Notes under the pieces: model-generated
Told to the model about the DNA's origin: nothing
Database searches by the model: none
Seen by the model: the letters and a program-made list of their open reading frames with translations, nothing else
Program-made: the position numbers and the translations under genes
Shown here: positions 11,652-25,071 of the stretch, piece after piece
How positions within the stretch are numbered: the stretch's first letter is position 1
Layout: each line of letters opens with the position of its first letter
Assembly (NCBI RefSeq): GCF_006345805.1
Contig: NW_021836871.1
Span: forward strand, 1 to 36,996
DNA from: Octopus sinensis
Lineage: Eukaryota
Length of the DNA: 36,996 nucleotides
Direction of reading: 5' to 3'

Positions 11652-11776
11652 CACATTTTTCAGGTAAAAACCAAGCATTATGCATAGTTTCTGATGTTGT
11701 ATTCATTACGCTTTGCACACTAGCTGCAGTTGTACAGCCACCTCTTGTACTGTTGGTCAAACAATCCAACCTGCCG
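11652..11776 (-). CDS. Host-gene exon G (phase 2 to 1): GRLDCLTNSTRGGCTTAASVQSVMNTTSETMHNAWFLPEKC
   Basis: Acceptor ttttttttag (alternative in-frame AG 6 nt downstream gives a start at 11770), donor G|gtaagt. Only one open frame, and it fits exon F. Confidence 0.7.
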
Positions 11777-12114
11777 CTAAAAAAAACCCAAATAAACAAA
11801 GATTATAAAATAAATAAATAAATAAATAAAATATTTTAATTGTTCTAATCTATGAATTTATAGACATCCACTGGACATCAAACGCAATGGTTAATAGTTT
11901 AGAGCAAAGGCAATACACTATATCACTGACAAAAAACATCTCTCAAGACACGACATCACACAGACGAATGAAGGAACTACAAACTATGCTGGTTTCAAGT
12001 AAGGCATTGGAAGATTGTGAAAGAAACTATTTATTGGGGTCTAATTATATCACTACTAAATAAAGAAAGTTTGATTTGAAAAAAAGGAGGAAAAACAGAT
12101 ATTTAAAATATGTT

Positions 12115-13410
12115 GTGTGTGTGTATATATATATACATATACACACATATACATACAACTATATATATATATATATCATATATATATATAATATATATAT
12201 ATATATATATATATATATATACAACATATATATATACATACATACATATATACATACATACATACATACATATATATATGCATACATACATATATACATA
12301 CATACATACATATATACACATATATATATATATATAATACATAATATATATATATAGATACATACATATATATATATAGATACATACATATATATATATA
12401 TATATATATAGATACATACATATATATATATAGATACATATATATATATATAGATACATACATATATATATACATACATATATATATATATAGATAGATA
12501 CATACATATATATTATATACATATATATATATATATATACATATATATATATATTCATAATTATATATATTATATATTCATACATATATATATATTCATA
12601 CATATATATATTCATACATATATATATATTCATACATATATATATATATACATACATATATATATACATACATATATAAATTCATACATATATATATATA
12701 TATACATACATATATATATATATATACATACATATATATATATACATACATATATATATATATACATACATATATATATATACATACATATATATACATA
12801 CATATATATATATATACATACATATATATAAATACATACATATAAATACATACATATATATATACATATATATATACCTAACATATATTACATACATATA
12901 TATATACATACATATATATATATTCATATATATATATATATATATACATATATATAAATCATACATTATATATATTCATATATATATATAATATATATAT
13001 AATATTCATATATAATATATATATATTATATATTCATATATATATATATATATATTATATATATATATATATATATATTCATATATATATATATATATAT
13101 ATACATCTATATAAATATATACATATAATATTCATATATAATATATATATATACACACATATATATACATACAATATATATACATATATATATATATTCA
13201 TATATATATATATATACATATATATAAATATATACATATATAAAATATATATACATTATATATATTATACATATATAAATATATATATATAATATATACA
13301 TATACATATATATACATATATATATATATATATATTAATATATATAGATATATATATATATATATATATTATCATATTATACATATATATATACATATAT
13401 AATAGAATAT
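12115..13410. repeat. ~1.3-kb compound TA/TACA/TAGA microsatellite
   Basis: Direct reading. Confidence 0.95.
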
Positions 13411-13629
13411 TAAAATAACTAAGTCTCTCTAAAAGAGAACAACGGCAGCGTTCCCGGAAAATAATAGTTATCGCCATACTAATATGGCATTCTTATAAAA
13501 ATAAGAAAAAAGCTGTCCGCTTATTAGCTCCATGAGGCCATCGCCTTAAGTTAGCTATTTGATACACAAACTGTATCCATATAACCTTCGAACAAGGGAG
13601 GTCAGTCGCTCCACACTACTTGACTGGCA

Positions 13630-13671
13630 GCTACAGACACGTTTCGGAGTATTGCCCCTTTTCAATGCAGC
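13630..13671 (-). ncRNA. Minimal type I hammerhead ribozyme with mutated core, in a PLE pLTR-like fragment (~13410-13675)
   Basis: GCUGCA-UUGAAAA-GGGG-CAAUA-CUCC-GAAA-CGUG-UC-UGUAGC. All three stems pair. The core differs from CUGANGA at C3 and G8. Confidence 0.72.
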
Positions 13672-13820
13672 GTATATGTATATGTATATATATATATATA
13701 TGTATATATATACATATATACATATATACATATATATATATATGTATATATATATACATATATATATACATATATATATATACATATATATATATATACA
13801 TATATATATATACATATATA

Positions 13821-14233
13821 CTCTTTTACTCTTTTACTTGTTTCAGTCATTTGACTGCGGCCATGCTGGAGCACCGCCTTCAGTCGAGCAAATCGACCCC
13901 GGAACCTATTCTTTGTAAGCCCAGTACTTATTCTATCGGTCTCTTTTGCCGAACCGCTAAGTGACGGGGACGTAAACACACCAGCATCAGTTGTCAGGCA
14001 ATGCTAGGGGGACAAACACAGACACACAAACACACACACACATACATATATATATATATATACACATATACGACAGGCTTCTTTCAGTTTCCGTCTACCA
14101 AATCCACTCACAAGGCATTGGTCGGCCCGGGGCTATAGCAGAAGACACTTGCCCAAGATGCCACGCAGTGGGACTGAACCCGGAACCATGTGGTTGGTTA
14201 GCAAGCTACTTACAACACAGCCACTCCTGCGCC
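13821..14233 (-). mobile_element. Full-length tRNA-derived SINE, family A
   Basis: A box TGGCTGTGT..., B box GGTTCAGTCCC, tail ...actgaaacaagtaaaagagtaaaagag. Confidence 0.92.
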
Positions 14234-14780
14234 TGTATATACATATATATATATATATATACATATATATATATATACATATATACATATATATATATAT
14301 ACATATACATATATATTTACATATATATGTATATATACATACACATATATATATATACATATATATGTATATATACATACACATATATATATATACATAT
14401 ATATGTATATATACATATATATTCATATACATATATATATATATATACATATATATATACATATACATATATATATATATATACATATATATATACATAT
14501 ACATATATATATACATATACATATATATATACATATACATATATATATACATATATATAAACATATATATATACATATACATATATATATACATATACAT
14601 ATATATATACATATACATATATATATAACATATACATTATATATACATATATATATACATATACATATTATATACTATACATATATATATACATATACAT
14701 ATATATATATACATATACATATATATATACATATACATATATATATACATATACATATATATTACATATATATATATATG
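14234..14780. repeat. (TA)n/(TACATA)n microsatellite
   Basis: Direct reading. Confidence 0.95.
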
Positions 14781-23339: not shown

Positions 23340-23400
23340 AGGCAGTTGTCTTTTCTTTTGTTAAGATCTTCAAATTCTTGACGGCATTTCACATAGCATT
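23340..23400 (-). CDS. Host-gene exon C (61 nt, phase 1 to 2): CYVKCRQEFEDLNKRKDNC
   Basis: Acceptor ttttcttaattgtttcag, donor CT|gtaaat. The other two frames contain stops. Confidence 0.8.
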
Positions 23401-24038
23401 CTGAAACAATTAAGAAAACAGACATTTGTGATTAACTGTAAAAACTTTATTATTGTATCATGAAGTTTCACAACATATGGTCTCAAAACTTGTGATATGT
23501 TTAAAAAAGTCCAAAGTACCAAACTACAGATGCTGAAATCACTCAGTAACTCAATGCTAAGAAAACTTTAAAATGATACCAGAAGTATTCTGAGTTCAAT
23601 TTATTGTAAACATATTTTAAACAAAGATATCTTTATAACCGAAGTTGTAGACATAGAGTTTGTCATGAATGAAGAGTAAGAGAAAAGTAAAGTAAAGCCA
23701 TATTTGTTAGTCATGGAACATCTTTCATTTGAGGCCAACAGCTGACACGTTACTCTTTACTTTTACAGTTATGTTCCTGAGTACTATTTTAAGATACTTT
23801 CATCTTGTCACACTCACTATGTAAAAACAAAATATAGTAATGCCCTGTCGATTTCTTCCAACACAACTTTAATTTTAAACAGTATTTTTATTTTACATTT
23901 TCTAAATAAAACAGTATAATAGCAGACTCACCTTTTTATTTTTATTAATTTTTTTTTACTAGCATACATGAAGTGGAGAATGGTAGCATATTAGTTTAAG
24001 AAAAGTCATGATGTATTTTATGAAAAATTGTTACTTAC

Positions 24039-24106
24039 TACAGTTATCACGCAAATCCTCCTCAGTGAGATTTGGACAAATATCTATTTGGCATGAATAC
24101 ACTTCA
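24039..24106 (-). CDS. Host-gene exon B (68 nt, phase 2 to 1): EVYSCQIDICPNLTEEDLRDNC
   Basis: Acceptor ctgttttcttttccag, donor A|gtaagt. The phases bridge exon A and exon C. Confidence 0.82.
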
Positions 24107-24379
24107 CTGGAAAAGAAAACAGCGCAAATTAAAAAAATACTTACAATGTATGTGTGGAATGTGTGTGTGTGTGTGTGTGTGTGTGTGTTTCATCAGCAAA
24201 AGCTTTTTAACATCCACTTTTCCATGGTTGCACATGTCAGATGGAATTCACTGTAGTAGATTTTCTGTGGTTGTAAGCCCTTTCTATCATCAATTTTCAT
24301 CTGTTTCTAATTGAAGTAATATTTCTCCTTAGCCAGATATGTCTTCATGAAAGAATGAAAGTGAATGAGAGAATATGTA

Positions 24380-24545
24380 TGACAAAGACACATGCACACA
24401 CACACACATGGGTGTCCTTCACTTTCTGCCTACCAAATTCACTTACAAGGCTTTGGTTGGCCCAGAGCAATGGTAGAAAACTCTTTCACAATATGTCATG
24501 CAGTGGGAGTGAACCTAAACCTTCTTTACTACACAGCCACACCTG
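24380..24545 (-). mobile_element. Diverged 5' part of a family A SINE
   Basis: ctaccaaattcacttacaaggctttggttggccc...gcagtgggagtgaacc...cacagccacacctg is collinear with family A. Confidence 0.65.
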
Positions 24546-25013
24546 TATGCAGATATGTAAATGAACATGGATGTAAACACATACACATGCACACACTATC
24601 CTCATTATCTTGTTTTCCATGCTGCTCTAGGCTCGAAGGATCATCAGGACCTGAATTCTTATTTAGACTTGATGTACTCCTAGACTGGTTGGGGATCACA
24701 GCTTACTTGTCGATTCCAAATTTGGTATTGTATCTGAGGCTAGATGCTCTTCAAATCAACAATTCTTCGAGAGAGGTTGTTTTGTCACCCACAATATTGA
24801 GTCCTTTGTTCTTTCATGGTAGTATGACCAAGAGGGTGTATAGAAGAAAGAAGTATGTAGTACATTACTAGAGGATGTAGTGCATTACCAACAGTGATAT
24901 ATATGACCCATGGAAATCACATTGAGGAGACTCAATAAAGAATAACCATGAAAAGAAAGTAATTAAACTATTTAATTAATTAAAAAGTTAATTAAAGAGA
25001 TAATAGTTCTTAC

Positions 25014-25071
25014 CTGCAAGGACGTGTATAATTACAGCTTGCTAAACACACAGCTGAAGCAGAACGTGAAG
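25014..25071 (-). CDS. Host-gene exon A (58 nt, phase 1 to 2): SRSASAVCLASCNYTRPC
   Basis: Acceptor tttttcttctaattttgcag with a ctaat branch-like motif, donor CAG|gtaaga. The other two frames contain stops. Confidence 0.8.

Follow-up and report, generated by a model that had tools for sequence, protein, structure and literature searches.

We analysed the complete unplaced Octopus sinensis scaffold VCDQ01002451.1 (assembly GCA_006345805.1), a stretch of 36,996 nucleotides that is called the window below, and found that six short minus-strand exons on it represent numbers 2-7 of the 12 coding exons of a genuine gene, LOC115232232. According to our favoured explanation, to which we give a probability of about 80%, this gene encodes a secreted helical binding protein that is built from five cysteine-rich modules, is held at the cell surface by a glycosylphosphatidylinositol (GPI) anchor, and belongs to a family that is so far known only from cephalopods and has no detectable described relative.

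Six exons of a 12-exon gene

A first-pass annotation of the same DNA, made from its letters alone, had proposed a chain of six exons with GT-AG sites and alternating phases. All six segments were located on the minus strand (Table 1). Upstream of each lies a pyrimidine-rich tract with a terminal AG, and the donor downstream reads GTAAG in five cases and GTAAA in one. In order, the exons measure 58, 68, 61, 92, 37 and 125 nt (441 nt in total), and their phases are 1-2, 2-1, 1-2, 2-1, 1-2 and 2-1. The joined exons form a single open frame, which translates exactly to the 146-residue peptide given by the first-pass annotation, and each of the six exons contributes three cysteines, as had also been noticed. 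The stop-to-stop frames around five of the exons span only 22-52 codons (87 codons around the last exon), and because these host frames are so short, five exons would be missed by a prokaryote-style list of open reading frames (ORFs), which agrees with the earlier remark that they were absent from the ORF track.

We scanned both strands of the window for open segments of 30-130 nt that lie between a pyrimidine-rich AG and a GTAA and that encode at least three cysteines. The scan recovered the six exons in order, along with trivial variants; no more than three other, unrelated candidates came up, and two of these are built on microsatellite-like sequence. Since the scan returned almost nothing but these six exons, their arrangement is not due to chance.

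The 146-residue peptide is 100% identical to NCBI XP_029657932.2, "uncharacterized protein LOC115232232, partial". The gene is therefore not hidden, as had been claimed, but was already annotated by NCBI as partial and uncharacterised. XP_029657932.2 carries two additional ends, SIKYLYCYIYFSSNFAA (25072-25122) at the start and GKYYLTEMSV (11622-11651) at the end. Both are in-frame intron read-through and non-coding; the orthologues splice at 25071 and 11652, and the exon 7 donor that they use at 11651/11652 is read through in the Gnomon model. The O. vulgaris orthologue, CAI9731645.1 (289 residues), falls into the same 90% cluster as the O. sinensis model and matches the peptide with 98% identity, two substitutions being seen in the per-exon matches. 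It consists of a signal peptide (MNALLSILLLFTASRSASA, cleaved before VCL), five six-cysteine modules with 30 cysteines, and a hydrophobic extreme C-terminus. The window covers only residues 11-160 of this protein, so the earlier count of three modules is correct for the scaffold and falls short for the full protein, which has five in O. vulgaris.

The orthologous gene in O. vulgaris spans ~117 kb, which explains why the 37-kb scaffold lacks exon 1 and exons 8-12. A search of both strands of the window for the signal-peptide exon (MNALLSILLLFT, up to four mismatches) gave no match, and tblastn was also empty. By tblastn, no module 4-5 or tail exons were found in the window, and no exons of the paralogue described below are present in it. 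The first-pass annotation had likewise reported that the start exon and the true last exon were not found.

We mapped the exons of the two family genes of Argonauta hians, an orthologue and a paralogue lying head-to-head ~5.3 kb apart, so that translation reproduces each of the two proteins exactly. Both genes have 12 coding exons, namely a signal-peptide exon (phase 0-1), five 1-2 / 2-1 pairs and a tail exon (1-0). In the A. hians orthologue, the six matching exons (58/68/61/92/37/125 nt) are identical to those of the window in length and phase. The 146 codons of O. sinensis and A. hians aligned without gaps, with 49% amino-acid identity, all 18 cysteines kept, and a ratio of nonsynonymous to synonymous substitution rates (dN/dS) of ~0.23, synonymous sites being saturated. 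These results are strong evidence that the window exons belong to a real coding gene under purifying selection.

Two other readings of the exon chain were weighed. Because the supporting protein records are all predictions, one could regard the chain as a chance run of open segments and not a gene; this is refuted by the exon lengths and phases shared with Argonauta and by purifying selection. The window scan also speaks against it, as does the cysteine framework, which is kept in two paralogues and in a contig of run SRR24189490 that is taken as a spliced transcript. It is very improbable that the scaffold copy is a non-functional fragment, for example a haplotig left unplaced or a segmental duplicate that covers part of the real locus. 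The unplaced 37-kb scaffold with six of 12 coding exons, its ends in satellite and long interspersed nuclear element (LINE) sequence, and the partial flag on the NCBI model are all compatible with such a fragment, but all six exons are intact: stops and frameshifts are absent, the splice sites fit the consensus, and identity to O. vulgaris is high, as given above. Moreover, a gene whose orthologue spans ~117 kb cannot fit whole in a 37-kb scaffold, and no second O. sinensis copy was found in protein searches.

Module architecture, probable anchoring and family relations

The protein contains five tandem modules of ~35-55 residues with six cysteines each, and one or two residues lie between modules (C-x-C). 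Each of the five modules in either A. hians gene is encoded by a 1-2 / 2-1 exon pair, a unit bounded by phase-1 introns. In 10 of 10 modules, Cys3 is the last complete codon of the first exon, and a phase-2 intron splits the codon after it; the phase-1 intron lies at or just after Cys6. This intron register is the one expected if a two-exon unit was duplicated in tandem to build up the array, in line with the first-pass proposal that a symmetric phase-1 module had been duplicated. The modules show two cysteine spacings: C-x3/4-C-x4..13-C-x5-C-x4..12-C-x11..29-C in modules 1 and 3, and C-x3-C-x10..18-C-x8-C-x5..7-C-x11..15-C in modules 2, 4 and 5 (type II), in which all six cysteines align across 15 modules. 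The GGC motif noticed earlier in modules 2 and 3 is present as EDGGC and RGGC; across the family, conservation is limited to the G-C of module 3. In paralogue B, the tail exon (A. hians locus L004, 34974-35089; residues 287-293 of P0008) opens with C-x-C-x3-C, like a module start, which suggests the vestige of a decayed sixth module.

By inspection, the N-terminus of the O. vulgaris orthologue has a hydrophobic core and a cleavage site between ASA and V, and this site is encoded by the first exon of the window. At the other end, seven of the eight family sequences that include a C-terminus, from both paralogues, carry a hydrophobic stretch with 1-7 residues after it and no cytoplasmic tail, and small residues (S, G, N, D, A) that could serve as the omega site lie 5-12 positions upstream of the stretch. 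The exception is P0005 (CAI9731646.1, the O. vulgaris paralogue B), and the tail missing from it is present in the O. sinensis and O. bimaculoides versions of paralogue B. The A. hians model of paralogue B (P0010) has a 16-nt first exon (MMASS) and a truncated signal peptide. The terminal exons of P0005 and P0010 look mis-modelled. Judged by these features, the C-terminal tail is probably a GPI-attachment signal rather than a normal transmembrane anchor. The predicted signal peptide and the GPI-signal-like tail of the orthologue bear out the first-pass view of a disulfide-rich extracellular protein.

For the fold, AlphaFold2 with the nine-sequence family alignment gave an all-alpha model with a predicted local distance difference test score (pLDDT) of 68 and a predicted template modelling score of 0.51. 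The single-sequence AlphaFold2 model (pLDDT 44) was too poor for use.

To find family members, we searched 1.84 billion representative proteins exhaustively by phmmer with one fast-evolving query sequence. Only five hits were returned, four from octopods and one ORF on a contig from run SRR24189490. The octopod hits were the O. sinensis model itself, the A. hians orthologue (43% identity), a C-terminal fragment from O. bimaculoides, and the paralogue, which occurs in O. vulgaris, O. sinensis and O. bimaculoides. The one further sequence that a profile search brought in was the version of this paralogue from A. hians. The fifth hit lies on an intronless contig of 1,107 nt, most simply explained as a spliced transcript. 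Its protein shares 40% identity with Octopus paralogue B, compared with 61% between the Argonauta and Octopus versions of B, indicating either a third paralogue or an origin in a more distant lineage. With the exception of this contig, the family seems restricted to cephalopods as far as the sequence searches reach. We found no description of it in the literature, and the family itself appears to be undescribed.

We compared the peptide, the full-length orthologue, the modules, module pairs and nine family sequences with Pfam by hmmscan (E up to 10) and found nothing relevant. One weak match, to Dynein_heavy (E = 0.19), was noise, and the GDNF/GAS1 family hidden Markov model (PF02351) was not matched by the peptide, the orthologue, the modules or the nine family sequences. 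No significant match emerged from sequence searches of the PDB, whether the query was the protein, the family profile or the type II module profile; the top match of the type II profile, an Anopheles odorant-binding protein (OBP; 3v2l, E = 0.56, 13.9 bits, two short pieces), was at chance level. Foldseek comparison of the model with the PDB yielded weak generic helical-repeat matches only (best E = 0.098, template modelling score 0.17), and comparison with viral structures yielded nothing. GFR-alpha and RECK structures are both present in the PDB library searched; GFR-alpha chains and the RECK structures 8tzp and 6wbh were absent from the best 50 of 92 Foldseek matches of this only moderate model. 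When the family profile was aligned by hhalign, the probability was 0.25% with human GFR-alpha1 D2-D3 (sequence verified against the PDB) and 0.2% with RECK CC1-5 (residues 36-350, verified sequence). The first-pass annotation, which did not recognise the family, is in accord with these searches.

The modules might nevertheless be extremely diverged GDNF-receptor/GAS1 domains or RECK CC repeats, and the protein the cephalopod counterpart of such a GPI-anchored co-receptor. The design is shared, in that a signal peptide is followed by several disulfide-rich helical repeats and then by a GPI-like tail; RECK likewise has five six-cysteine repeats containing C-x3-C, and the best hhalign path to RECK CC4, although non-significant, aligns four cysteines. 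On our reading of the sequences, the helix-C-x5-C-helix motif recalls GFR-alpha domains. However, we consider this origin unlikely, given the empty Pfam result for the full proteins, the modules and every family member, the hhalign probabilities, and the placement of neither GFR-alpha nor RECK among the best 50 of 92 Foldseek matches. Another difference lies in the cysteine framework, which has 10 cysteines per domain in GFR-alpha and reads CC-x8-C-x3-C in RECK. We hold only tentatively, and at somewhat less than even odds, that the module is an all-alpha domain with three disulfides that has not been described before, representing a new fold family that has no relative outside cephalopods, arose in their lineage and was multiplied by exon-pair duplication into two GPI-anchored surface proteins whose genes are divergently arranged.

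Under the favoured explanation of a five-module, GPI-anchored binding protein, a symmetric two-exon unit would have been tandemly duplicated into an array, with later divergence into two spacing flavours (modules 1 and 3 versus 2, 4 and 5). The protein would enter the secretory pathway and be N-glycosylated, and its 30 cysteines would form 15 disulfides, probably three per module, that lock short helical bundles. Exchange of the C-terminal tail for a GPI anchor would then place a rigid five-module helical rod on the outer face of the membrane, where it would most likely act as a binding protein, such as a co-receptor, an adhesion molecule or a recognition molecule.

Several points weigh against this explanation. 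The full-length family proteins are all computational models, and the helical fold is drawn from a structure model of moderate confidence. The binding or co-receptor role, although the most likely one, is assigned by pure analogy with GPI-anchored cysteine-rich helical repeat proteins, and the C-terminal tail could instead be a single-pass membrane anchor without a cytoplasmic tail. Profile comparison of module against module (hhalign) gave P-values of 0.01-0.37, which are not significant, so that duplication is deduced from the cysteine framework and the intron register, without significant residual sequence similarity. Finally, phmmer with a single sequence may have missed distant relatives outside the cephalopods.

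Gene families peculiar to the lineage are a known feature of cephalopods and are linked to their unusual nervous system, skin and suckers. The family described here is conserved, under purifying selection, probably displayed at the surface and without a recognisable domain, which makes it a candidate for such a lineage-specific family; if it is indeed a new cephalopod domain family, it could point to a lineage-specific receptor or recognition system. It also illustrates cleanly how a repeat protein can arise through multiplication of a symmetric two-exon unit. The analysis corrects the partial NCBI model and defines the 12-exon plan and the five-module architecture. We regard it as a useful annotation and a moderate lead, without major surprise, the general design being familiar.

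Other features of the window and of the Argonauta locus

The coordinates of the exons, introns and interspersed elements are collected in Table 1. Near the scaffold end, a satellite-like tandem repeat of 349 bp (7.7 copies, 97% identity) occupies 1878-4541, and a 34-bp repeat (4.4 copies) lies before this array, at 1715-1865. Among the retrotransposon fragments, three ORFs match the RVT_1 reverse-transcriptase family (10071-10646, 15433-15966 and 30086-30853). The protein sequences encoded by the ORFs at 8943-9779 (+) and 34776-35984 (-) are closely similar, indicating that the exons lie between two inverted copies of one LINE family. A microsatellite array of 1.28 kb pulls the GC content down to 18% between positions 12 and 14 kb of the window, and the microsatellite arrays yield many spurious Cys/Tyr/Ile-rich ORFs in the ORF list.

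Table 1. Exons, introns and repeat-derived features of the 36,996-nt O. sinensis window.
Feature	Position	Strand	Description
Coding exon 2	25014..25071	-	58 nt, phase 1-2; end of the signal peptide (..SRSASA, cleaved before V) and module 1 Cys1-3; AG acceptor, GTAAG donor; identical to XP_029657932.2; A. hians counterpart of same length and phase
Coding exon 3	24039..24106	-	68 nt, phase 2-1; module 1 Cys4-6
Coding exon 4	23340..23400	-	61 nt, phase 1-2; module 2 Cys1-3 (CYVKC...C); donor GTAAA
Coding exon 5	21882..21973	-	92 nt, phase 2-1; module 2 Cys4-6
Coding exon 6	17105..17141	-	37 nt, phase 1-2; module 3 Cys1-3
Coding exon 7	11652..11776	-	125 nt, phase 2-1; module 3 Cys4-6, conserved NTT sequon and N..W motif
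Intron of 5,328 nt	11777..17104	-	(TA)n arrays and same-strand LINE reverse-transcriptase fragment (15114-16677)
Intron of 4,740 nt	17142..21881	-	perfect (AG)59 at 19267-19384
Three shorter introns of 1,366, 638 and 907 nt	21974..25013	-	interleaved with exons 3 and 4
Part of intron 1, running off the scaffold edge	25072..36996	-	no signal-peptide exon
Part of the next intron, running off the scaffold edge	1..11651	-	no module 4-5 or tail exons; 349-bp satellite, LINE debris
Non-LTR (long terminal repeat) retrotransposon fragments	8943-10646 (+), 15114-16677 (-), 30086-31569 (+), 31951-35984 (-)		
(TA)n / (TAYA)n arrays	65-605, 12124-13401, 14236-14779, 27627-28176, 29911-30338, 36354-36719		

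In A. hians, a partial duplicate of the module-5a exon (DCEFACGAELSLVKTITKYNLC) was seen at L003 25175-25240, ~320 bp before the real exon (25496-25565). The two share their upstream intron and acceptor sequence, but the duplicate lacks a donor at the matching site and so probably is a pseudo-exon that arose by local duplication. The next gene beside the paralogue pair (L004 37790-44766) encodes a 356-residue protein with PAN/Apple domains.

Comparison with known systems

We compared the octopus protein with four kinds of cysteine-rich protein. Insect OBPs (PBP/GOBP) resemble its modules in being helical, in having six cysteines and in sharing the C-x3-C and C-x8-C spacings, but each is a single soluble domain of ~120 residues with quite different loop lengths. 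The extracellular modules spread by phase 1-1 exon shuffling (EGF, LDL-A and TNFR-type) are likewise disulfide-rich units with phase-1 bounds and tandem internal duplication, and such bounds let copies be added in frame. In contrast to them, the octopus unit is an exon pair with a conserved internal phase-2 intron after Cys3, its fold is predicted to be helical rather than beta-rich, and its module was not seen in any other protein architecture.

GFR-alpha/GAS1 proteins are GPI-anchored, ligand-binding co-receptors with several all-alpha, disulfide-locked domains, a design that is predicted on the octopus side, and helix-C-x5-C-helix and C-x-C motifs occur in both. Their domains, however, hold 10 cysteines in ~90-100 residues, against six in ~35-55 residues here. 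RECK, a ligand-presenting co-receptor, shares five tandem six-cysteine repeats, the C-x3-C motif and the character of a GPI-anchored surface protein. Its repeats follow the framework CC-x7/8-C-x3-C-...-C-...-C with long linkers, whereas the octopus modules have no adjacent CC pair, and RECK adds Frizzled-like, EGF-like and Kazal domains in a protein of ~970 residues. The octopus protein thus resembles GFR-alpha/GAS1 and RECK in design without being a demonstrable member of either, and it appears to represent a new domain family within a familiar kind of protein.

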